Shown: one piece after another, positions 3,847-58,341 of the stretch
Layout of the letters: every line of letters starts with the position of its first letter
Position numbering within the stretch: the first letter of the stretch is position 1
DNA from: Azolla caroliniana
Taxonomy: Eukaryota; Plantae; Polypodiophyta
Assembly (NCBI GenBank): GCA_043228905.1
Contig: JBHGNT010000002.1
Span: 248,001-312,000 of the forward strand
Direction: 5' to 3'
DNA: 64,000 nucleotides
Position numbers and translations under genes: made by a program
The notes under the pieces: generated by a model
Told to the model about the DNA's origin: nothing
Databases searched by the model: none
What the model saw: only the letters and a program-made list of their open reading frames with translations

Positions 3847-3858
3847 TGGTATCAGAGC
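3847..3858 (+). promoter_or_regulatory. Primer-binding site (initiator tRNA-Met)
   Basis: TGGTATCAGAGC 3 nt after the LTR end. Confidence 0.95.
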
Positions 3859-3873
3859 GAGCTGCTGCAGAAA

Positions 3874-12270: not shown

Positions 12271-12306
<36 letters not shown>

Positions 12307-13093
12307 AAGCCGCCAATTGACGAAGACACAAAGCTCAAGGTTGTTGCCTCTGAGTCTCCTATTGTACCACCTTTCTCATATAGTGATAGTTGGAGTCTGT
12401 GGGCTCCTGTGGTTATTCCCTATTAGGTTTTTCCACGTAATCATCCTATGTCGTCTCTTCTCTGTAAGTGTACGAACCTCCATTTCTGTTTTGTTCTCTC
12501 ATAAAGTGTTTGAGTCTTGGTTGTGGTTGAGCACTATTCCGCACAAACTGGTATCAGAGCTAGCAAAAAAATGGAAGAGTAATTCAAAAGCATGTTCAAG
12601 CTCACCGGCTCCAACTACCCAGTGTGGAAGTCGAAGATGAGGGACATGCTCGTGGTCAAAGATCTCTAGCTGCCAGTACAATTCAGGGACAAGAAATTGG
12701 ACAAGATCGATGCCACGACATTGGAGGTGATGAACATGAAGACGACAGCATACATACGGTGCTTCATCGACATGAGCTTGTACAACAACTTCAATGAAGA
12801 AAGTAAGGCTCATGTGCTCTGGGAGAAAATTGGCACCATGCTGGAGAGCAAAAACGTCATAAATTGGGTTTCGGTATTCCGGAAGTTAGTGAGACTCCAA
12901 TACCAAGACGGATCCAGCATGGCAGGGCACATGAACGCATTCCAGGGGCTCATAAATCAAACAACTTCTCTTGAAGTACCTCTGGCCAATGAGGTACTTG
13001 CATTTCTCCTGCTTGGTTCCCTCCCGAATAGTTGGGAGACGCTAGTTATCACTTTGGGCAACATTGGACCAAAAGGAAAGTAGTTGTCCCTAG
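12008..13093 (+). mobile_element. Truncated copia 'Copia-2': 5' LTR 12008-12545, PBS 12549-12560, gag pseudogene from 12571, cut by the insertion of Copia-B1
   Basis: TGTTGGGAA…TTCCGCACA, TGGTATCAGAGC; gag MFKLTGSNYPVWKSKMRD… closely matches the gag of Copia-3 but has in-frame stops. Confidence 0.9.
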
Positions 13094-16000: not shown

Positions 16001-16568
16001 TCGAGACGTAGTCTTCGACGAGTTCGCATCGTGGTATGCACCAAAGGCAACTTCGACTCCGACTCTCGTCGACCCGGAATCCGCCGAACAAGAGGTAGAA
16101 GATGGAGATCGCTTCGAACACATGTTCGAAGAAAGTCTGATTACAGCAAAGCCTAGTGGGCCACAAGATCCCCCACGCGACCCAAGCACGTCGTGGCCAA
16201 GTACGAACTTGGACAAAGGCAAAGGTAAGATGCCTGAATACGAAGTCAACCACCCCGACAACAGTGATTCGGATGTGTCGGCTCCCTCACTAGACAGTGA
16301 GTTCGGTGTACCCATCATGCGTACACCCGGAGTAAAGAAGGTGCTCACATCGGCGAGCGAAAGACTTCGATGCTCATCTAGAGCTAAGAATCCCGTCACT
16401 CGGCACGGCTACAACGAGTACATGGCCCATCATTACGCATTCGCGATGAAGGTAGTGGCCGAACAAGAGCCCAAGAGCTCCACCGAAGCGGCTTGTAACC
16501 CACGATGGGTGGAAGTTGTCAACCTTCGCCCACACATTGCAAGCCTTCGTCGCCGGCTTGAGGGGGAG
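13094..16568 (+). mobile_element. Copia family B copy 'B1': 5' LTR 13094-13529, degenerate PBS 13530-13541, decayed gag-PR-IN; RT/RNase H absent; probable PPT 16560-16568; no 3' LTR
   Basis: TGTTGAGA…TCTTAACA; gag MNTQMGSSLLSEKLD…WEYKM; VWFVDSGAS; LWHKRIGH; YWAEAAST; coding similarity stops at NPRWVE, followed about 45 bp later by CTTGAGGGGGAG. Confidence 0.88.
14553..14696 (+). repeat. 48-bp (16-aa) in-frame triplication between gag knuckle and protease
   Basis: TNYASNSDYDNRSGMF / TNHASNSDYDDCSEMF / TNYATNSDYGDHGVMF; also present in B2 at 24803-24946. Confidence 0.9.
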
Positions 16569-17775
16569 CTCCATTTGTCCGAATGATTGGGATGTCCAGG
16601 CCTTCGAACTCACTGTCACGGGAGTGAGTTGACGCGTTGTCGATTGGATATTCGTATTCGGACATCTTGGCCTTCCCTTTGTCGAGTTTCGGACTCGATC
16701 GAAATGTGATTCAGCCACTCGGGGGCTCCCGTGGTCCACTAAGCCGTGTCGTAATCGGGCTTTCTTCGTACATGCGCATGAGCTGATCTTCGTCTTCTAT
16801 CTCTATTTCGGCGGATTCCGAGTCGAGCGAAGTCAGAGTCGAAGTTGTTTCTAGTGCGTATTAGGATGCGGACTCGTCGAAAATGGCATCTTGACTTACG
16901 CAAGCTTTTCGTGTAGATGGGTTGTAGCATTTGTACCCCTTCTGTTCAAGTGAGTATCCTACAAGGATTCTCTAACTTCGGGTCAATTTTTTGTCGTGTA
17001 TCATTGGGAATATGCACGTAAGCGATTGCACCGAAAATGCAGACATGTGATAAGTCTAGCTTATTTCCAAAGAACTTCTCATGAGGAATTACATCGTGTA
17101 CTCCCGAGGTTGTGCACCTATCCATGAGGTATACAACCGTGTTTGCCGCTTCTGCCCAATACGATTTCGACAGGTTCTTCTCATTCATCATAGCCCGAGC
17201 GACTTCTACTATGTGTCGGTTTTTACGCTCAGCTACGCCGTTCTGTTGAGGTGTGTGACAGCATGAGAATTCTCGTCGAATTCCTTCCTTTCGGAGATAC
17301 CTCATAAACTCATCCGAAAAGTATTCTTTGCCTCCATCCGATTGAAGGCAGCGTAAGTGCCGACCCGTAGTTTTTTCGACTTCGGCCTTGAACCTCTACA
17401 AGTGTCTGAACACTTCGCTCTTCTATCTCACCGGGTAGATCTAGGTGTGCCTGGAGAAGTCGTCGATGAACGTGACGTAATATCGGCATCTGCCGAGTGT
17501 GCTTTGACAGGAACTTCACGCTCTCTACATAACGCTCGGCCACAACCGAGCTTAGAATCAAACACAGAAAACGGGGAATGAACAAATGACACAAAGGAGA
17601 GAAGAGTGCATAGGATGTTTAACATGGAAAACCCTGAGAGGGAAAAACCACGGGAGTCCACAGACTCCAAACTATCACTATATCACAATGATTACAACAG
17701 TGAGCTCATAGAGGCAACGACCTCGTGCTCACGATCTTCGCCACAGGCGGCGGTTGCAACAGAGGCAATGACCTC

Positions 17776-18229: not shown

Positions 18230-21200
18230 TCACTCCGGCATGGGATGTTACTAGTCCGATACGCTTCCGGCATGCATCCAGCTTGTCGGGTATCAGTACT
18301 TTGGTCAGCATATCTGACCCGTTCTCGGCCGTGTGGATCTTCATCAACGCGAACTCCTGGTCATCTACTCTTTCCCGGATCTAGTGATACCTTCGTTGGA
18401 TATGCTTCGTCCGGGAATGGTAAGCCGCATTCTTAGCAAGGTGGATGGCACTTTGACTGTCGCAGTAGAGCCGGTATTCATCTTGCCTGATACCGAGCTC
18501 TCCGATGAAGTCCTTCATCCATAATATTTCCTTGCCGGCTTCGACAGCCACCATGTACTCCGCTTCCGTGGTTGACAGCGCAACCGTCTTCTGCAGCCTC
18601 GACTACCACGAAACAGCTCCACCTGCATACGACATTACATACCCGGATGTAGACCGGCTGGTATCCACATCAGCCGACATGTTTGAATTGGTAAAACCGT
18701 CAAGTTGAGGTTTACCGGAGCCGAATCGGAAACACATGTTCGAAGTTCCCTTCAAGTACCGGAGTATCCATTTGACCGCGTTCCAATGCTCCTTGTCGGG
18801 ATTGCTCATAAACTGGCTCACCACTCCGACTGCGTATCCAATATCTGGTCGAGTACACACCATTGCGTACATTAAGCTCCCGACAGCATAGGCATATGGA
18901 ACCTTCATCATATCCGCCTTCTTTGCTTTTGTCTTCGGGCCTTGCTTACTGGATAACCTGTAGTTTGTCGGAAGTGTCGATCCGACCGGTTTCGCATCTG
19001 ACATGTTGAACCACTGAAGCACCTTTGTCACGTACTTCTCTTGTGACAGCCACAATTGCTTCATTGACCGGTTCTGAGTAATATGCATCCCCAGCATCTA
19101 TCTTGCCGGACCCAAGTCTTTCATTGAGAAGGTCTGGTTGAGAGCCTTCTTCAGCATCCGTATTTTGGCTTGGTCCCGTCTGACAATCAACATGTCATCC
19201 ACGTACAGAAGGAGTATCATGAAGTCGCCTCCCTCGAACTTCTTCACAAACACACAGTGATCGGCCTGCGTCTTGTGGTACCCTTGATCGGTCATGAAGG
19301 AGTCGAACTTCCGGTACCATTGCCGGGGGGCTTGCTTCAACCCGTAGAGGCTCTTCTTCAACCGGCAAACCAGGTGCTCCTTCCCTTTCTCCACGAATCC
19401 TTCCGGTTACTGCATGTAGATCTCCTCTTCGAGGTCACCGTGAAGGAATGTCGTCTTCACGTCTAGCTGCTCTACCTCGAGGTCCATGCTTGCCGCTATA
19501 CTCAGCACCGTCCAGATGGAGGTCATCTTTACTACCGGGGCAAATATCTCGTCGAAGTCCATGCCCTTCTTCTGCTAGAACCCCTTCACCACGATCCTGG
19601 CTTTGTATCTCGGGGGGTTGCCGGCATCTCCCGGTTTCAACTTGTACACCCACTTATTTCGGAGTGCCCGCTTTCCTTTCGGCAACTCCACCAATTTGTA
19701 CGTATGGTTCTCATGCAGGGAATCCATCTCATCCTGCATGGCACTTAACCATTTTCGGTTGTGGGTGTCATCCTTCGCTTCTTCGAAGCTTTCTAGCTCC
19801 CCCTCATCGGTTAGCAGCACATGCTCTACATCCGGAAATCTCCAGGGGGCCCTTCTCTCTCTGAGAGGATATCTCCGTCTCTGGGCTTCGGTAACCGGCT
19901 CCTCCATTTGCTCTTCATCCGAATCCGATTCAGGGTCTTGGTCGGTTCCGGTTTCAGCTTCCTCTACTTCTTCTTCTGCCGGTTCGGTATCCTCACCGTA
20001 ACCGACTGGTTCCTCGAGTGCTAACCGATCTCTTGCCGGTTGGGTCTGCTCATCGTAGAATCGATCCTTACCAGTCGACTCGGAGTTCATTATCTTCTTC
20101 TCCAACTCCGAATCGGCGAGCATCTTGTCCTCCATGAAGATAATATCTCGACTCCGGAATACCTTCTTGTCAACCAGGTCCCACACTCGGTAGTCGAACT
20201 CATCGTCGCTATAACCGAGGAATATGCATGGTTGGGTCTTTGGATCTAACTTTCCTCTCCGATCCTTAGCTACATGCACGTACGCGAGACACCCGAATAC
20301 CTTCAAATGTCGGTAGGACACTTCCTTACCGGTCCAGACTCTCTGTGACGTGTCTCCGTCCAAGGGTACTGAGGGTGATCTGTTTATCACATATGTCACC
20401 ATCGATAGTGCCTCAGCCCAAAACTTCTTGGGTAGTTTTGCATGCGTCAGCATACTCTGGACCCTCTCCATTGTGGTTCGGTTCATCCTCTCGGCCAACC
20501 CGTTTAGTTCTGGCGTCTTCGGCACGGTAAATTCGAGCTGGATTCCCTTCGAGCGACAGTACTCCTCCAACTGCCCCCCGGTATTCACCTCCGTTATCTG
20601 CTCGAACCGCCTTCACCTTCCGGCCGGTTTCTCTTTCCACTCTCGCGTGGAGTTCTTTGAAGACAGATAACACCTGATCCTTCTTCTTCAACGGTGTGGC
20701 CCACAACTTCCGGCTGTGGTCATCTATGAACGTCACAAAGTACTGCGATCCTGCATGTGACTTCGTGTCCACTTGACACACATCAGTATGCATCAACTCT
20801 AGTGGTGCATTGCGTCTCATCAGTGGCCTTGGTCGGAAGGAGGTCTGGTTTTGCTTACCGGCCAAACAATCAGTGCACTTCTCCAAGTGCACGTTCTTCA
20901 CTAGAATGAGGTTGTCGTCTGCAAGCCTCTTCATCCCCTTCTCCCTCATGTGACACAACCTTTTGTGCCACAGCTCACCGGCAATGTCGGATGCCACGTT
21001 CACTTCCTCTGCACATAACCGGGCATTCATCAAGTACAACATGTTTACCTTCCGGGCCCGAGCCACAATCAGGCTCCCTTTGTTGAACTTCATAACACTG
21101 TTCCGGATGCTACCCGTGTAGCCTTCATCATCTAGCCGACCGGCTGATATCAGGTTCAGACGAACCTCCGGAACGTGTCGGACATCCTTCAGCAGCATCT

Positions 21201-22275
21201 TGCATCCGATTGGTGTTGACAGACACACGTCTCCTATGCCGACAATTCGGCATGTACCTTCATTCCCCATCCGGACACAGCCGTGATCAACAGTTGAGTA
21301 GGATGAGAAGCATTTCCGGTTCAGGGTAAGGTGGAACGACGCTCCTGAGTCGACCACCCAGGTCATCTCGTCGTCGGCAAGGTTTATCCTACTCTCCTCA
21401 GTTATGAGCATCAACTCTTCTTCACTTGTCGCGATTGTCGTCGTTCCCTTTCGGTCCGTTCCCCTCCGGTCTTTACCGTTCCGGTCCGGTGTCCGCTTCG
21501 AATCGGTACCGTCGGTTTCCTTGTCTTTCCGGAAATGCCAACAGTTCTTCTGGAAGTGTCCCGGCTTGCCGCAATAGAAGCAAGTAGGCCTCCCCCTTGA
21601 CTTTGACCGTGTCCCCGACTTTTCCTGGTTCTGAGGACTACGGTTTCTATGTCTTCCGCGTTCCGATTCGGTAAGGAGCGCTTTGGAGTCGGAGCTCATA
21701 TCCTTATCTTTCCGACGCGCCTCCTCATCTAGCAAGCTCGACTTCACTCTTGCTAGGGATAATCGTTTCCCTTCCGGCCCGGCGTTGCCCAAGGTGACAA
21801 CCAACGTCTCCCAGCTATCCGGGAGGGAACCGAGCAGGAGTAGCGCTAGTACCTCATCGGCGAGAGGTACTTCCAATGATGTTGCCTGGTGGATCAGCCC
21901 CTAGAAGGCATTCATGTGCTCCGCCATGCTGGAGCCATCTTGGTACCGGAGTTTTACTAGCTTCCGGAATACCGAAACCTGATTAACACCATTTTTGTTT
22001 TGAAACATAATGTCGATCTTCTCCCAGAGCTCATGAGCCTTGCTCTCTTCATTGAAGTTGTTGTATAGGCTCATGTCGATGAAGCACCGTATGTACGCCG
22101 TTGTCTTCATGTGCATCACCTCCCATATCGTGGCGTCGATTTTGTCCGGTCTCTTGTCCCCGAACTGAACCGGCAACCAAAGATCTTTAACCATGAGCAT
22201 GTCCCTCATCTTCGACTTCCACACCGAATAGTTGGAGTCGGTGAGCTTGAACATGCCTCCCAACGAATCGTCCAT
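18230..22275 (-). pseudogene. Copia-3 gag-pol with several stops and frameshifts
   Basis: ORF pieces 21901-22275, 20413-21876, 19575-20588, 19098-19394, 18603-19097 carry gag, CCHC, PR, IN, RT (YVDD) and RH motifs. Confidence 0.93.
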
Positions 22276-27899: not shown

Positions 27900-30627
27900 T
27901 CAAGATGCCTTCCTCCGTGCATCGTCAGGAACTTGAACATTGGCTAAACTGGCAGCCATTGAAGCAGCTAGTGAAGAAATACTTTGATTTGCAAATTGGT
28001 TATTTGATGTACTCTCTTCCAGACTAGCCTTGATAGCAGCTGTCAAGATAAGATCTTCTTCCTTGGAATTCTTTCCCGACGTCTTTGTCGACTTTGAGAT
28101 CCTCTCTGCATCCTCTGGAGTAAGCCACTGCCCAAAATTATTTCCAGATTCTGATGAGAATGCACATTCTGTAGGAAAGTTGCCTCTGACGACAAAAATA
28201 CTCCATCCCTCACTTTGAAGGGATCCAAGGAAGGCTGAGAGGTAGAAATTAGACAAATGCTCTGGGGCTGGATAAAGACTGTTAAAATTGTACCACTGAT
28301 CACCAACTCTACGAATTGTGAACCAGTGGTCCTGCAGATGACATATAAATGCAACCTCTTGCTGAGGATTTAGCTTTGCAGTTTGGGCATCACGTGAATC
28401 GAGAGAAGTTAACTTCAAATCCCAAACATCAAGGGCCTTAGCTAAAACCTGGAGAAGGAATGGTATGTGTTTAATAATCTCTAAGATCTAGTCTAGAAAG
28501 TTCTTAATATCCCAGTTCATAGATTAACATAGATAATCATCTTCTCTTTTGTGTCACAGAAAATAAACTTGAATAACAACAAGAAGTATTACACAATATT
28601 AACTAGGACAGATGATCATTTTGTATGGCCCAAAATGAGCTTCACAAACAAAAAATAAACGTAGCACTTTCACAACTTAGGCAACAAGAAGAGGGAGTAG
28701 AAGGCAAGCGGATTGAGAAGGGGTGTTGCACTAGGTTGAATGTGTTTTTCCAAATATCTTTAGGGGGACACTCAATCTCATGTTTCAGTTAAGAGTGCGA
28801 AACACATTTCAAGTGTTTACTCCCATTGAAAAGCATTTCACCGTGGCATTATAACATGGTGAGAACAGACTTCAGTGTGAAGCTTCTGCCCTCATGCAGA
28901 TAAAACACCATCTTATGGTCGATTATCTCGCCATGTACGCCTACTTAAATTTTTTTCCCTAGTAGAGCCTCATTTTTCAGCTGTCACATGATCAAACTAT
29001 CCTTAAAAAGCATATTTTTAAACATCATGGGAAGACAGCAGCAACCATCTCCAACAGTGATGGCAGGTGCAGAAACGGCTATTGCCAAGAATTGTCCAAA
29101 CACATGGGCACACAACTTCTGATGTCATCTTCAAACTACCCTGAAATTGATGGACACAGAAGGGGTGATTCATAAATCATAAATTGGAAGATTACATCCA
29201 GAACTATACAAACAGGATTGCAAAAATATCACCAAGCATACAGTTTTATTAGAATTCTGAGTTCACAGCACCATATGCTTCGTTCCTTTCAAATATGTGC
29301 GGCAAATATATGTAATCATTTCATTGGCTTTACTCTCAGAAAGTCAACATGCACATTAGACCATTACATTAACTTTCTTTCACATCATTACAACCTGGGT
29401 AAACCTTCAAACAACATTTTGAATAGTACCCGTTTTCATTCTTCAAAACCATGTCACATATGAGATAAGAGTAAAAAGAGGCATCTATATAAACTCCACG
29501 AATCAACAGAGCATAGGACACTTCATGCATGGCACGGAACAGCTGCCATCATCATTCGCTACATATGATTCATCTATTCGCATTCATATTGGTTACACAA
29601 GCTATCATGTTTGGTTTACATAACTTCTTCAACATGTAATCTTCAAAATTATTCATGAAGAAGTTTTAATCAAAATGCGCTTACAAATTATGTATATATA
29701 ACTTAAGACCATGGAGAGAAGTCTTATGTTCTTGATAATCGACAATACCTACCATGGTGGCAACGCATCAAGTTTGAGGAACATGAAAAAGTGAGACTAG
29801 CCAGCCTACTCTATGGTCAGTGGAAGATACCTCCAGCTAAACAGGAGTGGTCATCTAAAGTGAAATGCCAAGAAAGTCAGAACAAACTGTATCTTTTGAA
29901 CAATTCTCAAAAATTTGGTTCCCTTGAAGAGTTAATAATAGAAGCCAAAACAGAGATTTTGTTATTTGGACATTTGTATTCCAAAATATTGAGCCATACA
30001 GGTAACAGAAGTATTTGTACATTTAATATCAAGGCAAAACTTGCAGTTTCTGCAAACACTGCTGAGGAGGATACTATGTATATGAAGCAACGTAAAGATA
30101 CCAACACTATCAAAAAAACTGTGTATCAAAGGTATACACAAAAACCAGTCCTATTCAGAATTGCTAAATATACACTTATTTGTCTTTAGAATACAGATCA
30201 AAGATGTGTTACTTTGGATATTCAGATCGAATTGTTCGGATGGACACATCTTCTTTTCATTGAACATTCATTTCATGGATAAAGATTTGGTTATCTTCAA
30301 AAAAAATACAGATCGAAAGAGAAATGTGTGTGAGAGAGAGTGTGCTTGTGCATGTACCTGGATGCTGAAGTTTCCATCCACAGACACATTCGACGATACT
30401 TCTTCTCCCAAACCAGAGGAGAAAAGAGACGAAGGATGAGGATGATGGGTGTGGACGTCCATTCCCATCTGCATCTCTCTCTTGTCGAGATCTGCAGCGA
30501 CTGCAGCGAGGTCTAACTCGGAGAAGAAAGGCCCCTGCAGCACAGTGTTGACACAGTGCACACCGCACAGCTTCGACTCCTGCACCTCGTGGTAGAGAAT
30601 CATGGATGATCCTCCACGCGAAGACAT
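27900..30627 (-). CDS. Ataxin-3 homolog (Josephin-domain deubiquitinase with a UIM-like motif); exons 30627-30358 and 28448-27900, 272 aa
   Basis: LYHEVQESKLCGVHCVN, GNFSIQ|VLAKAL, AFICHLQDHWFTIR, WYNFNSL (Cys-His-Asn triad intact), EEDLILTAAIKASL; phase-0 GT-AG intron 30357-28449. Confidence 0.93.
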
Positions 30628-30790
30628 GGATGGTATGCGATGGATCGACGAAAGAAACTTAAGAGGAGGAGCGTGGAGAGGGAGGGAGATGGTTCTTTCT
30701 TGACAGGCAGGCAAAGCAGGAAGGAATTTATGTTGTCCGTTTCTGTCTGTGTGTCTACACGCTCGTGGAGTTACATACATACATACATAT

Positions 30791-30805
30791 CTTCTTCTTC
30801 TTCGT

Positions 30806-30835
<30 letters not shown>
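30791..30835. repeat. (CTT)n microsatellite upstream of the ataxin-3 homolog
   Basis: Direct reading, one interruption. Confidence 0.9.
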
Positions 30836-30837
<2 letters not shown>

Positions 30838-31399
30838 CAACGATGCTTTCATGTCTCTTTCATTGCGCTGGTCTATAATTCCTTATATTTTGCTTAATTA
30901 ATAATTAGTTAAACTCTAACAATGAATGATCTAGAACATATGGGAGCCCCTAGCAATCTTAGAGCCTAAGGAGCTCTTTTATGTTTAGGGGACTACACTA
31001 TCCTCCTCAGCGCTCACGACATCTGAATGAAACACGTAAAGTTTGTTGGTGAGGCAAACCTCTCATATTCTGAATTAAATGTGGTCTACTAGACTTCTGA
31101 GGTATAATCCGATGCATATTTAATGATGGTAAGGAAAACCAATGGGGAAACATTTGTACTGATCTTGTATCCTTTGCTTAGGGATCATTTGGGTGTTCAA
31201 CCACCTTGCATGCTATATTTCTCTTTAGTCTTTTATAAATAACTTCTTATTGTTAGCATTTCTAATTATTTTGCTTGAAGAAGTTAATTTCCTATATTCC
31301 TTTTGGTTGAAGGACTTAATATGATTGCAAGCCATGCAAATGGTTCAATGTGCCCAAAATCTTGCCCATAAAAAAAATTGGCATCACTAGATACACCCA

Positions 31400-41864: not shown

Positions 41865-44800
41865 TTATCTGAGTTGCAAGGTTTCCTCTGGCAATGACTG
41901 TGGCTTTGCCAGCTTAACATTAGAACCTCCATTCAAAGTGGCAGCAGAAGCTGCTGGTTTCCTTGCAGCTCGACCCCATTTGATAGCTGAGACCAGAGAA
42001 TCTCCTTGGGATCCCAGTCCTCTTCGACCAACTAGTTTAACTCCAAGATTTTCACATAAGAAGACTAACCGTGCCTTATCCCCTCCCCTAACCTCCATCA
42101 ATTCCAAAGCTTGTTGTCGAGATATCATTGTGTAAAGGTGGAGCTGCTGCTGCTGATACATCTGAATTTGTTGAAATAAAAGCCTTTGTGGTAAAGGAGG
42201 CTGATCATTCATCCCACTCTCATTGACCTTCTTCCTTGCACCCATACCAATCATCACCCGTAATAGCACATGTGACTTAAGCTCACTAGTTCGAGGATCA
42301 AAAAGTACAGCAAAGCTTCCGAATTCAAGATCAGGTTCTCTGAACAAGTCTGCCAAAAGTGTAGCATAAGCCTGTGTGTCCTTCAGGATTGCTCGTTCAA
42401 CTTTTGCAGGAACCAACCTGTTGGCAGCGTGCGCAGTTATGTTACCAGCCTCCCTTAAACCACTCAGCAATGCACCATGCATAGTTGCTGGGTACCTACG
42501 GTTTGTGGCCTCTCCAGCAAAAAATAGCCTCCCATCACCAACACTCTCCGCTAAAAGATCATAGTCATCCCCTGATGCACCAACAGCAACGTGAGAATAT
42601 GATCCAAAACTAAGAGGATCCCCTCCCCATCTCGTACATACTGTCTGGATAGGATCAGGAACACTAATTCCTTGAGGTTCATAAATGCCTGCCATTATGA
42701 TAGAACTTAGTTAAGTAACTAGGTGGTATCAATAAGGAATGTTCTGAAAAATTACAGTGACAACTTTGCCTACCTCTTAGAATCGTCAATACTCGTTGAA
42801 TTGCCTCTGCTGGATGCATTAGTTCGAAATTGATCGCTGCCTCCCCTGCAACAAGTGCGAGCAAAAGCGGCCCTCCTGATACAGCTGCATAACTATAGAA
42901 CAGAAAAAACTCACCCCTTCTCTCTGTGCTTTCAGCAAGGTGCCCAAAGGTATCAAGTTCAGAGCCCCAGAAAACTCTAGGAAAAAGCATGGCCACCTTG
43001 TTTAGCAATCCAAAACCAAGCCTTCGGATCGCATCAAGTTTTCTCTGTGGCAGCTCTGGCTCAAATTTAATCATCTTCTGCTTCAAAACCCCTAAGGGCA
43101 CCGTGCATAGAGCCATATCTCCTTCAAAAACTTGATTGGTTGTTATTACCTGTACACCACTACTGCCATAGCGAATTGTATGTACCTGTTTTCCGTAGAA
43201 GATAGGTATTCCTTCTGCAAGTGCGGAAACCAATCGCACATTACCTCCAGGAAGAAAGCAATGATCACCCCCCATCTCGTATGGATCATCCTGGTCCCAA
43301 AATGCAAGTGAAAGCTCTGACAGTAGTCCTGCATTTGCATACTCAAGATTTGCAAGGTGCCAATCAAACAACTGCCTTTCATCAAGAACTTCTGCAACCC
43401 CTGCGTCTTCACGCAAAGTCTCCAGAGTTTGTCCTAATGATATCCCTTCTGCAATCGGTCCCATCTGCTCTCTCAATTGGCTAGCTCTATCCAAAAGTTT
43501 GTTGAACTGGGACTCAACTTTAGCATCCACATCCACTGCCAAAGGTGACCCATCGGGTTGATAAAGGGGACATTTCTCTCTTATCTTGTGCAAGGGGATG
43601 GAAAGTTGCCTAGCAAGGACACCCAAAGGGTTTCCATGCAATCCAGTTATAACACTACCTCCAAGATCTGCAGCAGCCACCTGGCCCCCTCCTTCCATTT
43701 TCCTGGTGTAAACCCGCCCTCCAGGCCTGTTCCTTCCGTCTACAACAGCGACTCGATGCCCAAATGCCAATAGTTGTCTTGCAGCCGCAAGCCCTGCTAA
43801 TCCCGCCCCAATGATAACGATTGTGGACTTTGTTCCCTCTTCTGGTATGACTGCTTTCACTGCTGGTGACACTCCAAAATTGATATAACCATATGAAAAG
43901 AGAAATTTATAGGCTGCAGTTACTAGTAACTTATGTTGGCTTCGAATACTTTCCATAACTTGGGCTTGATCCAACCACGTGTTAACACTCTCTCGCCATC
44001 GAGCTAAGATATGGTTTCTTACTTCTATATAATTATCTTGTTCCACATCTCCAATTGTCTGCACAACTCCTGCTTCAATCTCTTCTTCTGTTAACGAATC
44101 TTTGGGAAACCCAATGGACGCAGCGATCATCGCTTCTTTTTCTTTGTTTTTATCAAGGTCCACTGATTTCTTCTTCTTACCTTTAGCTGGAGAAATCTCT
44201 GCACCTAGCTGAGATTGGATCATGACATCCATGAGATTCTCATCATAGCTCAAAGCCCTTGCTTGTTGCCGAAGGGCTCTTACATTCTTACTGCCTCCTC
44301 TGAGCCTCTCCTGTGTTCGTTTCCTTCTCTTCTTTGCGAAGCCATCAGGAACATACTCAGATACAAGAGTCCTCTTCTTTGCAAAACCCTCTATACTTTT
44401 CTTCTTTACAAAGCCCTCAGGGCCATCCTCAGATTCAATACGTTTCTTCTTTGCAAGGCCATCATCAGATTCTACACATTCTCTTTTTGCGAGACCATCC
44501 CCAAATTCTACTCTTTCTTTCTTTGAAAGGTCATTCTCAGATTTTAAACTTCCCTTCTCTGCAAATCCATCCACAGATTCCACACTTTCCTTCTTACCAA
44601 ATTGATCCTCAGTTTCCAAACTTTCCTTATTTTCAACTCTATACTCGGATTCCACGTTTTCATTCTTTTCAAATACATCATCGGTGGTCATGTTTTCTTT
44701 CATTTCAAATACATCCTCAAATTCAGGACGTTTCTTATTTGCAAGTCCATTCACGGAGTCTACAGAGTTCTGTATTGCGATAAGAGGAGGTTTTCCCACG

Positions 44801-44973
44801 GAAACACTAAACGAATCTGCTGCTCCTGTTTCAGTTATGTTAAGGGTACTCACAGGATTACGCGAGTTGACAGTATGCTCTGCTGCATTCTCTGAGACAC
44901 CCTTGTCAGTCATGGTTCTTTCATCTACGATGACCGTAACTTGAGGTCTGTCTATGGTTTCACCGTCTGGCAT
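41865..44973 (-). CDS. FLD: Lysine-specific histone demethylase 1 homolog of the FLOWERING LOCUS D type (SWIRM + FAD amine oxidase); exons 44973-42774 and 42688-41865, 1007 aa
   Basis: SWIRM ([17 protein letters not shown]…[12 protein letters not shown]…YGYINFG), [32 protein letters not shown], catalytic [29 protein letters not shown]-like tail [11 protein letters not shown]…EVRGGD…[12 protein letters not shown]; 85-bp phase-1 GT-AG intron. Confidence 0.93.
44332..44772 (-). repeat. In-frame 36-bp (12-aa) degenerate repeat, about 12 units, in the FLD N-terminus
   Basis: [12 protein letters not shown] / [12 protein letters not shown] / [12 protein letters not shown] etc., residues 68-214. Confidence 0.85.
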
Positions 44974-49580: not shown

Positions 49581-49975
49581 AGTAATACACTAGCTTCATG
49601 TTCACAAGCTTATCTAGTCCCTTTGGTGCTGGACTTGACATCATGTGCGATCAGGAAGGCGAATGCTACGAAATCTTAGGACGGCTTTGGAATTTGTCAG
49701 CCTTTAATTTCATCTGCAGGCATGTCAGCAGCTGCATACATATTTGTCATGCAGACATACGCCGAAGTGCAATTTTCATCCAACATTACTGACTGCTCAA
49801 AGGCGCATCTTCCAATTTTCATGTTCACCCATTTGTGACAAGCACCTAATATGGTAAAAAATAATGGAAGATTCTCAAAAGTCGAAGTCTTTTCAAGAAA
49901 ATAATTAGCCTTGGCAAAATGTCCCACACAGACAAACAGAGCAGTCACCCAAGTGTAGTGTTCTAATGTTGGAGT
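49581..49975 (-). pseudogene. ~393-bp tandem duplicate of the PPR gene 3' end (S2-E1-E2, stop, 3' UTR)
   Basis: Aligns to 49973-50368; 3-bp AGT microhomology at the junction; scattered substitutions and one indel. Confidence 0.92.
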
Positions 49976-50089
49976 AATACACTAGCTTCATGTTCACAAG
50001 CTTATCTAGTCCCTTTGGTGCTGGACTTGACATCATGTGCGATCAGGAAGGCGAATGCCACGAAAACTTCAGGAAGGATTTGGAATTTG

Positions 50090-52296
50090 TCAGCCTTCAA
50101 TTTCATCTGCATGCATGTCAGCAGCTGCATACATATTTGTCATGCAGACATACGCCGAAGTGCAATTTTCATCCAACATTACTGACTGCTCAAAGGCCCA
50201 TCTTCCAAGTTTCATGTTCACCCATTTGTGACAAGCACCTAATATGGTCAAAAATAATGGAAGATTGTCAGAAGTCGAAGTCTTTTCAAGAAAATAGTTA
50301 ACCTTGGCAAAATGTCCCGCACGGACAAACAGATCAGTCACACAAGTGTAATGTTCTAATGTTGGAGTGAGACCATAAACAACACACATATCATCAAAAA
50401 CTTGTGCTCCCTCTTTCAATAAACCTGCATGATTACATACACTTAGCAAAACAAGGAATGTAACTGAATCTGGCACAATCCCTTCTGACAACATTTTCAC
50501 AAGAAGCCTCAAAACCAAAGTCAGCTCACCTAACTGAGCAAATCCTGCCATCACTGCAGTCCACGATACAACATTCCGCCCAGGAAGCAGTTGAAATACT
50601 TCTTGTGCTCGTTCAAGAGCACCACACTTAGCGTACATGTCTACCAACACGTTTCCAAGCACAATGTCTTTTTGCAATAATCCTTGTTTTCTAACCTCAG
50701 CATCTATATCTTCACCAATCTTAAGAGCACCTACAATGCCACAAACTTTCAAAATGCAAGAATATGTGACTGCATCGGGGGAGACTTTGTCCTCCAGCAT
50801 ACATTTGTAGTATTCCAAGGCATCATCACCAAGTCCATGCTCTGCATACCCTGTCATCAATGCATTCCAAGACACAACATTTCTGACTGGAAGCTGTTCA
50901 AAGACCTCTTGTGCTTTTTCAAGAGCACCACATTTGCTATACATGTCTACCAATGTGTTTCCCAGCATAATATCATTTTCCAACAACCCATGCTTTCTGA
51001 CCTCAGCATCTATGTATTCTCCAATCTGAAGAGATCTTGTCATGCTACAAGCTTTCAAAATGCAAAGATAAGTTATTGCATCTGGGGGCATCGGCATCTT
51101 CTTGAAGCATCTCAGAACTTCATCAACAAACCCATGTTGTGCATATCCAACCATCAGTATGTTCCAAGAAACAACATTCGGACATGGAAGCCGGTCAAAT
51201 ACTTCCTTTGCTTTTTTGAGTGCACCACACTTGACATACATGTCTACCAATGCATTGCCAAGTGTTATGTCTTTTCTCAGCAGCCCTTCTCTCTTGATCT
51301 CAGCATCTATATCTTCACCAATCTCAATAGATCCGACAATGCCACAAGCTTTCAGAACACAAATATAAGTTATTGCATTTGGGGAGATTCCCTCATCCTG
51401 CATCTGCCTAAAGCATTTCAAGGTCTCATCACCAAGTCCACTTCGTGCATAACCCGTCATCAATGTGGTCCAAGAGATGACATCTCGCACTGGAAGCTGT
51501 TCAAAGACGTCTCTTGCTTTTTGGAGTGCTCCACATTTTGCATACATGTCTACCAATGCATTGCCGAGCACCGTGTCCTTTTCAAGTAAACCTTGCATTC
51601 TGACCTCAGTGTCTATGTCTTCTCCAATGTCAAGAGCACCTACAAGGCCACAAGCTTTCAGAATGCAAGAATAAGTGAATGCATCCGGGGACACTCCTTC
51701 ATCTTGCATCTGGCCGAAGCATTCAAGGGCCTCATGCCCAAGCCCATGTTGGGCATAACCTGATATTAATGCATTCCACGGCACGGCATTTCGAGCCGTG
51801 AGCTGCTCGAATACTTGCCGTGCTTTGTTGAGCGCACCACATTTGGCATAGCAACTGAGCAATGCAGTGGCAATGTAGGTGTCCTTTGGAATCAAATTTT
51901 TCTTGAGAACTTCGGCATGGATTTGTGTTGCCATGCCTATATCCTTGTGTTTCCCACACGCTTTTATCTTATGTAAAAGACCAACACGATCTTCTTGAAG
52001 CCACAGCAGCGTATTGGGCAGTTCGAGACTATTTAGCTGCTTGAGCTGTAGCCAAGGAGGATTACGGCACCCATGGATCCACAATCCTTTCCTTGTCTGT
52101 TTGTGCCGAAAATCAGGACAGCTTGGGTTTCGCTGCAAATGAGAAATCAGTTACATCCTAAAAGAAACCGTTAGAAACACTAATAATATGTGACGCTAGA
52201 TAATCCTCCTTACAATACCTTGTTATCTCGATTGTCCCAAAATTGAGAAGGGTCTCTGAAGAATTCCTTCCACAGAAAGTCCGTTTCTACAGCCAT
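50090..52296 (-). CDS. PLS-class PPR protein (17 motifs + E1 + partial E2, no DYW) with an N-terminal OSB-type PDF motif; exons 52296-52219 and 52132-50090, 706 aa
   Basis: Exon 1 MAVETDFLWKEFFRDPSQFWDNRDNK; 86-bp phase-0 GT-AG intron; exon 2 RNPSCPDFRHKQTRKGLWIHGCRNPPWL then regular L-S-P motifs (MYAKCG, VVSWNALM, DAVTYSCILKxC) and LGAC…GRWAFE…AYVCM. Confidence 0.88.
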
Positions 52297-53569
52297 TCAT
52301 ACATACGCCTTCACTTACTCCGCCTATTGGAGCTCTCTATTTGTGACCATGGATTTTAGGACGTCACGCCTTCTGATTGCTAGGATTCCAGAGAGAAACA
52401 GGCCATAATTGGCCTGCGAGACATATCATGATTATGGGTAACATTCATATTATCCAGAAACAAAACGAAAAGCTCTAGGTTTTCAAAAGGTACATAATCA
52501 TGATTTTAATGGATGTGCTGGATTGAGTTTCAAGATATTTTACAAATTACAAGCATGAAGTATGTAGCTTATATACATGGCCATTGCATTGCTCGTAGTG
52601 CTTCCATCTTTGGCTAATTGGGTAAAGTGTGAGTTGGCTTCATGCTTTGCAAGCACCAAGATTCACGGAGACATCCATGTACCTATGTGATTTTCTATCC
52701 TATGAGAAGTTCATAAAATGATATTTGTAGTAGGCCATCTTTGTGGGAAGAGTTTCCCTTGGTGTACTTCAAGTCTTTTGGGGAGGTATGGTACCGAAAG
52801 GATGACAAATCCTCGGCATGGAGGCCATTGTTATTGAACCACCTCAACACTTATGAGTCCCATGATCTTTTTCTTTAATATATTGTCACCCTTTCCTTCA
52901 ATGCTTCAAACATCTTCCTTATAATGCTCTGCGATAGCATGTTTAAAATCCAATTGATGAGGTTCATTGCCTACAAAGGGTGAGATTGATTTAGCTCTAT
53001 TGATCTCTACCTTTTTCCATTGTGGTGGCAACATTAAGTGCTATTAGTCATAACTCTTCTTTATATCGATGAATCTTAAGAGTTTGTTGTGAGTGGATTG
53101 AATTGTTTAGATTTGCAACAAGAAAGAATACATTGATAAAGTTGGTGTCGCTCCTCACATTGATGAGTTCAATTAAGAGGGTTCTATAAGCATGGCAAAA
53201 ATTTGGAACTAAAGGATTGGATTCGCAACACAAAAATAAAATCACTAAGATACAAGTTAGGTGGAAATGATGTATCAAAGGACAATTTAGTAGCATTGCA
53301 TACTTTATCATTACATTAATGATGCCATTAAATTTATGAATTTACAAAATTTAACTATTTGCCATATTATGGCTTTAACATGATACTACTAATATTCGTG
53401 CAAACTCTCCAAATCAATGTTAAGTACTCTCTAACAGCATTGAATTTGTTTGTATGTTGGGTTTCTTACTATTTCGTATATATGCATGTATGTTTTGAGG
53501 ATACCTCTTTTATCAACCCAATTCCTACCATGGTTGATTTCCACTCCAAGAGTCAACTTGACGAGGTCA

Positions 53570-54758: not shown

Positions 54759-56669
54759 TCAGAGTCTACGAGCTGCCAGCTCAAAAGAAAACCTCCCAAG
54801 ATTTACCTTACCCCATTTTTGGCATGAACCCAATAAAGCACAGCAAACTGGATAGTGCAGAAATGGTATATTCTTAATTTGTGACAGAGCCTTGTCAAAA
54901 AGGCCAGCACAAGCAAAAAGATAAACCATGCACATCATATGCTCTATATAAGGTGTAATGCCATATACAATTGTCATTTTTGCAAATTGTTCCTGACCCT
55001 CATCCAGAAAACCTGAGTAGCTACATGCCCTCAGCACACAAAGATAAGTCACCGCATCTGGAGAGAGGCCCTCAGCTTGCATCCACTCAAAGCAATCCAG
55101 GGCTTCCCGTCCCTGGCCTTGCTGGACATATCCTGTCATGAGTACATTCCAAGAGATTGCATCTCGAACAAGAAGCTCCTCGAACATTTCATGTGCTTTT
55201 CCAAGCTCCCCGCATTTGGCATACATATTAAGCAGTGCATTGCCGAGTGCAATATGTTTTTCCAACCATCCCTTACTAATAATGTCGTTGTGAAGCTGCT
55301 TCCCTTTATAAATAGCTCCGACGCTGCCACATGCCTTTAGGATGCAAATGAAGGTAATCACATTCGGTGAAATTTGATCAGTATGCATCTTTTCAAAACA
55401 GGTCAGTGCAGCTTCCCCCTGCTCATGCTGAGTATACGCTGAAATTAGTGTATTCCAGGAAACCACATCCCGAACAGGAAGCTCATTCAGCACTTGCTCA
55501 GCTTTTGCCAGTGCATTACATTTTGCATACATGCCCATCAAGACATTACCAAGCTCAATAGGCTTTTCCTGCAGTCCCATGCAAACAAGACCAATATGAA
55601 TCTGTTGGCCCTTATCAAGTGCTCCTTCACTGCCACAAGCCTTCAAGATACTAATAAGCGTGATTGAATCTGGTGAGAAACCATCAAACTGCATCTGTTT
55701 GAAACAATCCAGCGCCTCATCTATTAGCCCCTGCTGGGCATAGCCAGCAATCAAGGCATTCCAAGACACTACATTTCGAGTAATGAGCTCATTGAAGACT
55801 TCTTGTGCTTTTAACATTGAACCACATTTAGCATACATATCTATCAAAGCCGTGCCGAGAATAGTGTCTTTTCTCAGCAAACCCTTTCTAACAACCTCTT
55901 CATGAATGCCTTTACCCAAATCAAATGATCGTACACTGCCACATGCCTTGAGGACAGAAGTAAACGTGATCGCGTCAGGAGACAGGCCCTCACTTCGCAT
56001 TCTTTCATAACAATAAAGAGCTTCTTGATCATTACCCTGCTGGATACATCCTGCAATGAGGGCTGACCATGGAACCACGTCCCTGACAGAAAGCTCATCA
56101 AGAGCTGCTTGAGCTCTTTCAAGCTCGCCACATTTGGCATACATGTCCACCATAGCAGTCCACAAAAGGGTATCATCTTTGGCTACCAATCCCTTCCTCA
56201 CAATCTGATCATGGATTTGAATGCCCATATCTAGAGCTCCTATGTTGGCACATGCTTTGAGGATGCAAGTGAAGGTGATGGCATCAGGAGAGAGTCCGTC
56301 ATCTCTTTGCATGCATTCAAAGCAATGAAATGCATCGTGGCTCTGCCCGTGTTGGGCATATCCCGCAATCAGTGCATTCCACGAGACAACATCCCTAAAA
56401 GAAAGTTCATCCAGCACTTGCTGCGCTTTCTGCAAAGCACCACATTTAGCATACATGTTCACAACTGCACTCCCTACATGCTTGGGACTCATTTGAAGCA
56501 ACCCCTGTTTCAGAATGTCAGAATGTATACATATTCCTTTGTTGAGGTCTTTCTTCTTGGCGCAGACCTTGAGGATGGCCAGTACAGAAGCAATGGCATC
56601 CTTTTTCCTTCCCAGAACAAAAGCTCTGCCACTATTCCAAGACTTCCAAAGACTTCGCGAGATCACCAT
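54759..56669 (-). CDS. PLS-class PPR protein (17 motifs + truncated E1, no DYW), about 636 aa from the first ATG
   Basis: Intact ORF with L-S-P triplets, P2-L2-S2 and ALLGSCQKWG; N-terminus MVISRSLWKSWNSGRAF is Ser/Arg-rich, possibly a targeting peptide; true start uncertain. Confidence 0.9.
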   Translation of the reverse strand: MVISRSLWKSWNSGRAFVLGRKKDAIASVLAILKVCAKKKDLNKGICIHSDILKQGLLQMSPKHVGSAVVNMYAKCGALQKAQQVLDELSFRDVVSWNALIAGYAQHGQSHDAFHCFECMQRDDGLSPDAITFTCILKACANIGALDMGIQIHDQIVRKGLVAKDDTLLWTAMVDMYAKCGELERAQAALDELSVRDVVPWSALIAGCIQQGNDQEALYCYERMRSEGLSPDAITFTSVLKACGSVRSFDLGKGIHEEVVRKGLLRKDTILGTALIDMYAKCGSMLKAQEVFNELITRNVVSWNALIAGYAQQGLIDEALDCFKQMQFDGFSPDSITLISILKACGSEGALDKGQQIHIGLVCMGLQEKPIELGNVLMGMYAKCNALAKAEQVLNELPVRDVVSWNTLISAYTQHEQGEAALTCFEKMHTDQISPNVITFICILKACGSVGAIYKGKQLHNDIISKGWLEKHIALGNALLNMYAKCGELGKAHEMFEELLVRDAISWNVLMTGYVQQGQGREALDCFEWMQAEGLSPDAVTYLCVLRACSYSGFLDEGQEQFAKMTIVYGITPYIEHMMCMVYLFACAGLFDKALSQIKNIPFLHYPVCCALLGSCQKWGKVNLGRFSFELAARRL

Positions 56670-57061
56670 GTTCTCCACAAAGCATTTAATTTTGAGTGTT
56701 ACACGTAAAAATAAATCATAATTCGTGCTGCATTTATTTATATTTTGGCCTACATTAATCAATACAAGACAATTCCTATCCTGCTTCTACGCTCACACGT
56801 TTGCAGAACAAACAACAACACCCTCCCCCTCCTCCTCCTCTATGTAACCACCATCCCATGCTATGCCATGGTTATAGATCCACCATTAATCACTATGAGG
56901 AGATTCATATCCCGCTTCTGCTCTCACACGTTCACGGAACAAACACCAACACCCTCCTCTTCCTCCTCCTCTGAGTTGCCACCATGCCATGCCATTCTGA
57001 TACACCCACAACATCCCTTCCCTTCAAAAATATTACACAACCAGCAAAAGCACTCAACACA

Positions 57062-57369
57062 ATCTTCTTGAGGCTGCAGCAGCGTATTGGGCGTTTTGAC
57101 ACAATTTAGCTGCTTGAACTGTAGCCAAGTAGGATTAACACACCCATGGATCCACATCCGTTCCTTGTCTGTTTGTGCCGAAAATCAGGACAATTTGGGT
57201 CTCTCTGCATATGAGAAATCAGTTACAGTCCAAAAAGAAACTGTTAGAAACACTAATAATATGTGACTCTAGATCATCCTCCTTAAATTACCTTGTTATC
57301 TCGATTGTCCCAAAATTGAGAAGGGTCTCTGAAGAATTCCTTCCACAGAAAGTTCGTTTCCAAGGCCAT
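57062..57369 (-). pseudogene. Second copy of the two-exon PDF-motif cassette, frameshifted; part of a ~550-bp duplication (57062-57625 vs 51989-52530)
   Basis: Exon 57369-57292 MALETNFLWKEFFRDPSQFWDNRDNK; intron 57291-57205; RDPNCPDFRHKQTRNG then a 1-bp deletion at 57156/57157 leading to TAA at 57108-57106. Confidence 0.88.
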
Positions 57370-57461
57370 TCATACACCTTCACTCATTCCACCTATATAT
57401 AGGAAGCCCTCTATTTGTGACCATGGATTTTAAGACGTCATGCCTTCTGATTGCCAGGATT

Positions 57462-57496
<35 letters not shown>

Positions 57497-58341
57497 CCAT
57501 AATCGTCCTGCAAGACATATCATGATTATGGGTAAACATTTATATTATCCATAAACAAAAAGAAAATCTCTAGGTTTTCAAAAGGTCCATAATTATGATT
57601 TTAATGCATGTGCTGGGTTGAGTTTGGAGACATAGCATATATACATGGGAAGTGAATTGCTCATCATGCTTCCATGTTTGGACATGAATGAGACTCCGAG
57701 TTAACAGACTTTCTTGACAGCAAGGATTGTTGTAGTGAACATTCACAAAGTTTATTCTCAGGAATGAATAATTAATTTGGCAAAGACACAGGAATCCAAC
57801 AGTTTTCCAGGAAATATGTATCACGTTCAACAACTTCCAGCTAAAGACAGAAGATAAAAGATAAGATTTCTCTAACGAAATGGTGTACTCCGTACAGAAA
57901 GGGCTTAGCTTTTTCTGACAAAACACTCTATGAAGATTGCAATGGTTCAGGCAAAACGTGTATATAATTTATGGTTCTCATGCAGAAAAATAGCATAATA
58001 TAGCCAGAAATATGAGTTTTTTTCTTCTGGGAAATGTGTAGTAAGACCATAGATGGTAGGGTTTCCCCGGAAATAATGTCGTGTAATTTTATCACCACAA
58101 ACATTCGGATTTCTTGACAAAATGCAGTATGAAGATCACAAAAGTTAGGGTTTCTCTGCATAAATGGCGTACTTTGAAGAGCCATGCGAAACCTGAGCCA
58201 GGAAGAGGAGGGACAGGAATCGCAGAACAAGAAGGAGAACAAGAAATCAGAAGAAAAATAAACAAGGAAAAGAAGAAAGAAACAGAAGTGGGAACGAAGA
58301 GAAGAGCGGATAAGGAAAGAAAAAAAGCAGAAGAGCCTTAT

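Follow-up and report, generated by a model that had tools for sequence, protein, structure and literature searches.

An intact fern gene places an OSB-type PDF motif at the N-terminus of a PLS-class PPR protein

A gene on the reverse strand of a 64-kb stretch of Azolla caroliniana DNA (hereafter the window) joins the PDF motif of OSB proteins to a PLS-class PPR array. OSBs maintain DNA in plant organelles and hold single strands of it by means of this motif. Comparison with a second genomic copy and with genes of other plants shows that the locus is an intact two-exon nuclear fern gene under selective constraint, and that it belongs to an old multi-gene family of mosses, clubmosses and ferns and is not a one-off. 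The best explanation, which we consider reasonably probable, is that the PDF motif would serve as a nucleic-acid grip on an intact PLS-PPR protein of this old family. The interpretation offered in the initial annotation stood as regards the homology to the OSB PDF and the fusion to a PLS-PPR. To be amended are the place of the gene, which is one of many, and that of the intron, which is shared with moss and clubmoss PDF-PPR genes and not with the OSB gene compared.

The gene is composed of two exons of very unequal length. Exon 1 (52296..52219, reverse strand, 78 nt) is an ATG followed by 25 codons, 26 in all, and ends in AAC AAG. It encodes MAVETDF followed by the N-terminal half of the PDF motif, LWKEFFRDPSQFWDNRDNK. 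The intron (52218..52133, reverse strand, 86 nt) is of phase 0 with GT..AG borders and immediately follows the codon for the invariant PDF Lys. It reads GTATTG...TTTGCAG, has an A+T content of 66% and carries a CTAAC 42 nt 5' of the acceptor. Exon 2 (52132..50090, reverse strand, 2,043 nt) starts with CGA AAC CCA and stays open as far as the TGA stop codon (50092..50090, reverse strand), which is kept both in L001, a 96%-identical genomic copy, and in a downstream duplicated copy. The beginning of exon 2 (52132..52049, reverse strand) matches the PDF profile and encodes the second half of the motif, RNPSCPDFRHKQTRKGLWIHGCRNPPWL. The coordinates and the abutting profile halves thus confirm the proposal that a 78-nt ATG exon is joined to the PPR reading frame through an 86-nt intron, and the splice model is backed by other PDF-PPR genes, from a moss and a clubmoss, with the same intron position. 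Retention of the intron would halt translation two codons in. Translation from a downstream start would give a truncated array, because the first Met of exon 2 falls within the initial PPR motif. A first exon this small is easily overlooked in annotation.

Upstream of exon 1, a conserved region (52297..52530, reverse strand) is the putative promoter and 5'UTR. Two ATGs within it (52300 and 52304), 4 and 8 nt before the proposed start and out of frame with it, had been missed earlier. Immediately 5' of the ATG at 52296 there is an in-frame TGA, as had been noted, and we agree that a transit peptide is not obvious. None is recognizable, and the N-terminus MAVETDF is acidic, with Glu and Asp among the seven residues before the motif. 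An upstream exon encoding a transit peptide was considered and is unlikely, since the in-frame TGA blocks acceptors 5' of the ATG. The sole AG after the TGA, the candidate acceptor for such an exon, is missing from L001 and from a neighboring copy.

To identify the motif, a profile made solely from PPR-linked PDF motifs, seven in number and all from other plants, was scanned against the six-frame translation of the whole window. Profile positions 2-21 match 52278..52219 in exon 1 (i-E 5e-8) and positions 21-50 match 52135..52046 in exon 2 (i-E 8e-12), so that both halves meet exactly at the splice junction of the model, at profile position 21. Aligned separately, the two exon translations cover the PDF consensus end to end and keep 12 of its 14 nearly invariant positions. 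The other two carry conservative replacements, W by F in 'QFWDNR' and V by L in 'PPWL'. The same PPR-derived profile finds 1,173 representatives at E <= 1e-3 and retrieves the Populus 'protein OSB1, mitochondrial-like' with an E of 2.3e-28. Both PDF motifs of this protein align to the profile residue by residue, at 59-61 bits each. The HMM check suggested in the initial annotation therefore matches both exons as well as true OSB1 proteins, and the motif is a homologue of the OSB PDF.

A linker of ~21 residues (52048..51986, reverse strand), the least constrained coding segment, leads from the PDF motif to the PPR array (51985..50264, reverse strand). The array is composed of five L-S-P triplets followed by L2 and S2, that is (L1-S1-P1) x4, L1-S1-P2, L2 and S2, with five S and five P anchors spaced ~102 residues apart. 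Pfam PPR families match with E values of 1e-83 to 1e-42 (PPR_2, 1.4e-83; PPR, 2.5e-69). By manual parse, the remainder (50263..50093, reverse strand) is an E1 of 34 aa and an E2 cut short after 23 of ~34 aa; the Pfam E_motif match is weak and below the cut-off (E 0.12), and E1 is recognizable by eye. Pfam gives no DYW_deaminase match before the stop at 50092..50090, and L001 has the same stop. The 17 motifs with E1 and partial E2, lacking DYW, are thus as first described, and the fusion of PDF to a PLS-class array is real. Neither exon product has an SSB/OB-fold domain by Pfam. Only 7 residues precede the motif, which leaves no room for an OB fold, a domain that is poorly conserved among OSBs. 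The 3' end of the gene is duplicated in tandem, which had gone unnoticed before. With a period of 393 nt and 94-98% identity, the duplicate (49581..49970, reverse strand) copies the terminal ~270 nt of the gene together with 3' flank (49973..50363) and contains an 83-aa reading frame (49697..49948) that repeats S2-E1-E2.

An AlphaFold2 model of a PDF-PPR homologue, P0255, was used as a proxy for the window protein. The PDF of the homologue is modeled at a pLDDT of ~90 as a helix, three short strands and a helix. The pLDDT dips at the equivalent of the linker, and the predicted PDF sits on this flexible connection and is not packed on the PPR array. A sequence search of the PDB with the PDF profile gave no match, Foldseek against the PDB with the PDF model returned nothing at E <= 0.001, and VIA-align of the model against 48,161 chains reached a best Z of 3.0. 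From these PDB comparisons the modeled PDF is not assignable to any known fold, and none is excluded.

Proteins combining PDF and PPR motifs occur in Adiantum (at least nine), A. nelumboides, Pteridium, Diphasiastrum and Sphagnum. As in the window gene, where the PDF is N-terminal of the PLS array in one reading frame once spliced, the PDF precedes a PLS-PPR array in P0027, P0029, P0045, P0063, P0078, P0082, P0099, P0134, P0148, P0162, P0203, P0207, P0238, P0247, P0260, P0267 and P0311-P0314. A full DYW deaminase is found by Pfam in P0027, P0045 and P0312, and the 564-residue Sphagnum protein P0247 ends in ...DYW, with DYW_deaminase recorded for its gene; moss, clubmoss and fern all have some members with a full DYW. 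The PDF is preceded by 7 residues in the window protein, by 1-30 in many homologues and by 90 in P0247, where they come from an exon of their own further 5'. When PDF motifs were placed in a tree, whose resolution is low, the PPR-linked ones clustered separately from the C-terminal OSB-type ones. A literature search found no papers on the PDF and PPR architecture, in keeping with the earlier remark that no characterized protein of this kind was known.

Comparison of gene structures shows that a phase-0 intron following the invariant Lys interrupts the PDF in the moss, clubmoss and fern family. The intron is present at this site in Sphagnum compactum (L005, 2025..2208) and in Diphasiastrum (L004, 1753..2026), and the annotated proteins P0247 and P0203, respectively, are joined there. 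Also in favor of the splice model, the Pteridium transcriptome reading frames P0269 and P0253 have a contiguous PDF followed by PPR motifs. The intron is not universal: gene spans indicate that the genes for Adiantum P0078 and A. nelumboides P0082 are intronless. The comparison with OSB genes that had been proposed went the other way, and the intron is absent from Populus OSB1, the sole OSB gene compared. Two database proteins, P0007 and P0002, start at half a PDF motif, and the contig of P0002 ends 25 nt 5' of its reading frame. The family is probably under-counted because the first exon is so easily missed, as these two proteins illustrate.

Selective constraint was assessed with L001 as the reference for substitution counts. 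L001 keeps the ATG, both splice sites (GT and AG) and the stop, has an intron of 87 nt and an identical C-terminus (...AADMHADEIEG*), and the 706-codon frame is free of stops and frameshifts in both the window copy and L001. Exon 1 differs by four synonymous and no non-synonymous changes. For exon 2 the dN/dS (omega) is 0.20, and 0.18 in its PPR part. Of the 39 codons separating the PDF from the first Met, 7 differ non-synonymously and 4 synonymously, with an omega of 0.49 over the first 22. The upstream region, whose proximal 47 nt are also found in L001, is ~86% identical to that of a neighboring PPR gene (57370..57625). In this neighboring copy the motif-coding 60 nt of exon 1 are identical, the whole 5' module is 86% identical and the intron is kept. 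The module carries a frameshift and stands apart from its PPR reading frame, indicating that PDF 5' modules do decay.

In the mechanism that we favor on these sequence comparisons, the PPR array would, like that of other PLS-class PPR proteins, recognize a particular sequence in organellar RNA, and the PDF would most likely add a sequence-independent single-strand grip at the N-terminal end of the array, on the 5' side of the RNA footprint. The target of this grip may be the RNA itself or ssDNA exposed in the nucleoid. That the PDF binds RNA should not be assumed, as OSB1 and OSB2 are reported to prefer ssDNA over RNA (PMC4166229). Since the window copy lacks a DYW domain, a deaminase would have to be supplied in trans for any C-to-U editing; the alternative would be a role as a site-binding or stabilizing factor. 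Counted against this explanation are the replacement of one nearly invariant PDF Trp by Phe, the out-of-frame ATGs, the lack of a recognizable transit peptide, the truncated E2, the missing DYW, the 3' duplication and the frameshifted neighbor.

Could the likeness to the OSB PDF be due to chance or composition, and the exon-intron model be an artefact of reading? Pfam has no model matching the PDF motif in either exon product, and a word-based search with residues 1-60 of exon 2, its N-terminus, came back blank. The later profile search shows that this blank reflects a limit of sensitivity and not absence. The two exactly abutting profile matches, the recovery of OSB1 by the same profile and an intron site conserved across three plant lineages refute a chance resemblance, which we regard as extremely improbable. 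It is also conceivable, though quite unlikely, that this copy is non-functional or decaying, with exon 1 not spliced or translated or the gene silent, and that the PDF halves are relics. The truncated E2 and missing DYW, the 393-nt duplication at the 3' end, the ATGs upstream of the start and the frameshifted module now apart from its PPR reading frame would all fit such decay. However, the 706-codon frame is undamaged in both 96%-identical copies, the ATG, splice sites and stop have all been kept, the omega is 0.20 and the four changes in exon 1 are all synonymous in the PDF frame. A start further downstream, moreover, would cut into the PPR array.

Somewhat less unlikely, but still doubtful, is that the PDF of PPR proteins is a module for protein-protein contact, oligomerization or localization instead of a nucleic-acid clamp. 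It might, for example, dock the PPR protein on OSB-coated nucleoids or on other proteins with a PDF, or stand in for a classical transit peptide. The PDF lies at the extreme N-terminus, the usual site of targeting and docking elements, and is predicted to be held on a flexible linker away from the PPR array; OSB2 is also reported as a tetramer (PMC6963530). Yet ssDNA binding is the only published PDF activity; in OSB1 the PDF is reported to be sufficient for it, as cited in PMC6963530 and PMC4166229. Aromatic and basic residues (W, F, K, R), typical of single-strand binders, make up the nearly invariant PDF positions, and in Sphagnum P0247 the 90-residue extension on its own upstream exon means that the PDF is not itself the presequence there.

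A bolder proposal, which the same comparisons allow us to put forward only as a tentative and rather unlikely one, is that PDF-PPR proteins tether editing-site recognition to ssDNA in organelle nucleoids, for example to the strand displaced at transcription bubbles or R-loops. Were this true, a subset of sites would be recognized co-transcriptionally in mosses, clubmosses and ferns, or editing factors would join recombination and R-loop surveillance beside the OSBs. The DYW-less window copy would then be the targeting subunit of such a complex. Mosses, clubmosses and ferns edit hundreds to thousands of sites, and it is exactly in these most heavily editing plant lineages that the PDF-PPR family is found. 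PPR editing factors and OSBs have so far been treated as separate machineries, one for RNA editing and the other for control of DNA recombination. A conserved family of fusions, of which some members carry a DYW deaminase that looks active, suggests that the two are physically connected. The PPR-linked PDF is a naturally portable version of the domain and makes it testable whether the PDF binds RNA as well as ssDNA and whether it places editing factors on nucleoids. The compact PDF-PLS-E-DYW genes of Sphagnum, such as that of the 564-residue P0247, are candidates for such tests.

With OSB proteins, the window protein has in common the ~50-residue PDF motif with all hallmark residues (W..FF..P..WWDNR..K....PDFKHK.....LW.....P.WV), the two conservative exceptions aside. 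OSBs carry an N-terminal organellar transit peptide and a central OB fold, and at least one PDF motif after the latter. Unlike them, the window protein lacks an OB fold by Pfam and has a single PDF at the extreme N-terminus with a PPR array after it, and its PDF is interrupted by an intron that the Populus OSB1 PDF does not have. PLS-class E/DYW PPR proteins are the site-recognition factors for organellar C-to-U RNA editing. The window protein shares their L-S-P triplets, L2-S2 and E1, and its nearest relatives are fern PLS PPRs. It differs in having an N-terminal PDF and no recognizable transit peptide, and in ending 23 residues into E2 without DYW, whereas a complete DYW deaminase forms the C-terminus of PDF-PPR members from Sphagnum, Diphasiastrum and Adiantum. 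The accessory domains of PPR proteins listed in a Physcomitrium review are RRM, LAGLIDADG, SMR, NYN, CBS and SAP, and the PDF is not among them (PMC9459714). PPR4, with an N-terminal RRM, and the PPR-SMR proteins follow the same principle of a sequence-specific RNA reader combined with a small general nucleic-acid domain (PMC9459714). Those proteins are P-class and carry unrelated domains, whereas the window protein is PLS-class and its added domain is known only from DNA-maintenance proteins.

The PDF-PPR gene lies on the minus strand at 52296..50090. Sequence reading places its ATG at 52296, with an in-frame TGA directly before it. Exon 1 (52296..52219, 78 nt) ends in ...GAT AAC AAG and encodes MAVETDF-LWKEFFRDPSQFWDNRDNK. 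The intron (52218..52133, 86 nt, GTATTG...TTTCTCATTTGCAG) is 66% A+T with CTAAC 42 nt 5' of the acceptor, and in translation of the window sequence its retention leads to a stop two codons on. Exon 2, an open reading frame from 52132 to the TGA at 50092..50090, opens with RNPSCPDFRHKQTRKGLWIHGCRNPPWL; after the PDF come a linker of ~21 residues, five L-S-P triplets, L2 and S2 (17 PPR motifs). The C-terminal end consists of E1 followed by 23 residues of E2, and the DYW domain is absent from the C-terminus of the exon 2 product. The initial annotation, which had an OSB-type PDF motif joined to a PPR array, was right in all particulars of the gene that could be checked (exons, intron, 17 PPR motifs, E1 and partial E2, no DYW). 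An upstream exon is unlikely. Three ATGs fall within 9 nt at 52298..52304 (minus strand; gtATGtATGaATGg). Two of them, at −4 and −8 relative to the start ATG, are out of frame and open ORFs of 5 and 25 codons, a caveat on translation from 52296; the one at −4 is also found in L001, a genomic copy of the gene, and in the neighbouring copy described below.

Profile A1, built from seven PPR-linked PDF motifs, was searched against all six reading frames of the 64-kb window. Its matches at 52278..52219 (profile positions 2–21, i-E 5e-8) and 52135..52046 (positions 21–50, i-E 8e-12) abut exactly at the proposed exon 1/exon 2 junction. Among the 120 PPR relatives closest to exon 2, 7 have a complete, uninterrupted PDF motif N-terminal to the PPR array; they are annotated proteins from Adiantum capillus-veneris, A. 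nelumboides and Diphasiastrum complanatum and one Logan contig. Aligned with 89 PDF motifs, both exon translations together cover the consensus end to end and keep 12 of 14 nearly invariant positions; the remaining two changes are conservative, W to F and V to L. The same intron recurs elsewhere: a PDF-PLS-E-DYW gene of Sphagnum compactum (L005) has a phase-0 GT..AG intron at 2025..2208, right after the invariant Lys, and a Diphasiastrum PDF-PPR gene (L004) has one at the same site (1753..2026). The annotated proteins P0247 (Sphagnum) and P0203 (Diphasiastrum) are joined exactly there. The abutting profile halves and the shared moss and clubmoss site thus provide strong comparative evidence for the phase-0 splice proposed in the initial annotation.

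Coding span equals protein length for P0078 of A. capillus-veneris and P0082 of A. nelumboides, so these genes are intronless. The suggested comparison with OSB introns gave no match in the one OSB gene read, Populus OSB1, whose two PDF motifs sit in one exon. By these comparisons, the intron is old within PDF-PPR genes, some fern copies have lost it, and the OSB gene read does not share it.

Searched against 1.84 billion proteins, the profile, whose source motifs are all PPR-linked, matched 1,173 cluster representatives at E ≤ 1e-3. The majority of its top matches are proteins of 250–600 residues with one to several C-terminal PDF copies. P0182, a Populus nigra protein labelled 'protein OSB1, mitochondrial-like', matched at E 2.3e-28, its two PDF motifs aligning over positions 3–54 with every hallmark residue present; in P0161 the PDF motifs are preceded by a Pfam SSB domain. 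The identification as an OSB motif is upheld by this retrieval, and on sequence grounds the motif formed by exons 1 and 2 is the OSB PDF motif. Three matches, P0133, P0161 and P0166, bear unusual labels: a Cladocopium (dinoflagellate) gene model with 7 PDF motifs, a Striga 'Interactor of constitutive active ROPs 2' with an SSB domain and 3 PDF motifs, and a Coptis protein of 1,526 residues named for a kinesin motor domain. They are possibly fused gene models or contamination.

PPR repeats occur in 13 of the top 150 profile matches. These 13 are Diphasiastrum P0099, P0162, P0207 and P0203; Sphagnum P0238 and P0247, the latter a compact PDF-PLS-E1-E2-DYW protein of 564 residues ending in ...DYW; and Adiantum P0148 (two PDF motifs), P0260, P0267 and P0255. 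Pteridium aquilinum contributes transcriptome ORFs P0269 and P0253, and the Logan contig protein P0134 combines PPR repeats with three PDF motifs. With one Adiantum motif as query, a word-based search gave seven PDF-PPR proteins of A. capillus-veneris, one with DYW; two more from the profile search bring that species to nine. A tree of 89 PDF motifs unites the PPR-linked motifs of ferns in one clade (SH-aLRT 98) and places those of moss and clubmoss in another group (support 81–84), with no C-terminal OSB-type motif in either. With 60 usable columns, the tree neither shows nor excludes a single origin. Taken with the common intron, this grouping favours an old fusion, later multiplied as PLS-PPR genes expanded, over repeated recent captures.

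In L004 (Diphasiastrum MU835231.1), three second and two first PDF halves stand in series at 167..2128 upstream of one PPR gene, each pair divided at the same profile position. The series is consistent with genes in which two or three PDF motifs stand in tandem, an arrangement also present in P0134, P0148 and P0162. At ~770 nt downstream of where the gene annotation ends, a separate ORF carries an E motif and DYW; the annotated protein of 503 residues may therefore be truncated.

One rival to a functional gene is a silent or decaying copy. The E2 of the gene is truncated, a caveat on calling it intact, and there is a tandem duplication at the gene end (minus strand; 49581..49970 versus 49973..50363; 393 nt, 94–98% identity). 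The duplicated segment comprises 117 nt of 3' flank together with the last ~270 nt of the gene, which encode the S2-E1-E2 end and include the stop codon, and the duplicate carries an 83-aa ORF (49697..49948) copying the C-terminus. L001, a 2,338-nt contig of an ENA assembly with ~96% identity to the gene, keeps the ATG, GT, AG and same stop, with an intron of 87 nt. All four exon 1 differences from it are synonymous in the PDF frame, and exon 2 as a whole has dN/dS 0.20, with values of 0.18 in the PPR part and ~0.5 in the linker. A downstream start would shorten the array, since exon 2 has its first Met midway through the first PPR motif. Together, these features argue for a translated, constrained two-exon gene.

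A second PLS-PPR gene lies 2.5 kb upstream. A second copy of the 5' module (57046..57625, minus strand: ~250 nt upstream, exon 1 at 57369..57292, intron and exon 2 start) stands in front of the ORF of this different PPR gene (54759..56762, minus strand). The modules share 86% identity over 585 nt, including 60 identical nt of exon 1 with the motif code; the PPR bodies are alike only in 75–77% patches. A 1-nt deletion near 57153 in the second PDF half of the neighbouring copy changes GGATTGTGG to GGATGTGG and shifts the frame to a stop. A GGAGGA-rich stretch of ~290 nt, which includes a ~125-nt tandem repeat, separates this module from its PPR ORF. Either this copy is a PDF-PPR gene in decay, or it points to movement of the 5' module between PPR genes.

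The window is plant nuclear DNA. The nearest PPR relatives come from ferns. An LSD1-like histone demethylase gene (41865..44973, minus strand; Pfam SWIRM E 1e-12, flavin amine-oxidase E 4e-55) is divided over at least two ORFs. Two exons of a gene for a Josephin-domain, ataxin-3-like deubiquitinase occupy 27900..28418 and 30268..30852 (minus strand); the upstream ORF also translates an (AGG/CGG)n run, as poly-Arg. Gag, integrase and reverse transcriptase are encoded by copia-type LTR retrotransposon copies at 1917..7948 (+), 12257..16586 (+) and 18603..22275 (−). The protein sequence of the reverse-transcriptase segment 1917..3221 recurs unchanged within 6248..7948, suggesting that elements at 1917..7948 are nested or in tandem.

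AlphaFold2 was run on the natural homologue P0255 (285 residues, 89-row alignment). The model showed the PDF as a helix, three short strands and a helix (pLDDT 92–97), then a low-confidence linker and a confident PPR solenoid. Modelled alone, the PDF gave the same elements (mean pLDDT 85). A PDB sequence search with the PDF returned no match, Foldseek with its model none at E ≤ 0.001, and VIA-align a best Z of only 3.0. The PDF therefore looks like an independent, tethered module, its fold matched by no solved structure in these searches.

With architecture, OSB homology, constraint and age of the fusion established, a mechanism can be proposed. The PPR array would provide sequence-specific RNA recognition, and the N-terminal PDF would hold single-stranded nucleic acid in a general way on the 5' side of the footprint, with RNA or nucleoid ssDNA as its candidate ligand. 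Being without DYW, the Azolla copy would either depend on a deaminase supplied in trans or function as a binding factor. Alternatively, the PDF may serve a protein-interaction or localisation role. No presequence is evident at the N-terminus of the gene product. The two PDF halves together (47 positions) contain 10 Lys/Arg, 5 Asp/Glu and 8 aromatic residues, a composition that, we infer, would fit a single-strand binder. Published accounts of OSB proteins give the PDF motif a length of ~50 residues and derive its name from Pro-Asp-Phe; they report that the OSB1 PDF suffices for ssDNA binding and that OSB1 and OSB2 prefer ssDNA to dsDNA or RNA (PMC6963530, PMC4166229).

A full-text literature search found no paper describing a PDF-PPR protein; most subscription journals fall outside its coverage, so 'undescribed' is provisional. 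A review of moss PPR accessory domains names RRM, LAGLIDADG, SMR, NYN, CBS and SAP, the PDF not being among them (PMC9459714). A 2026 survey of the OSB family required both an OB fold and a PDF (PMC13393729), so that proteins pairing the PDF with a PPR array would have been left out.
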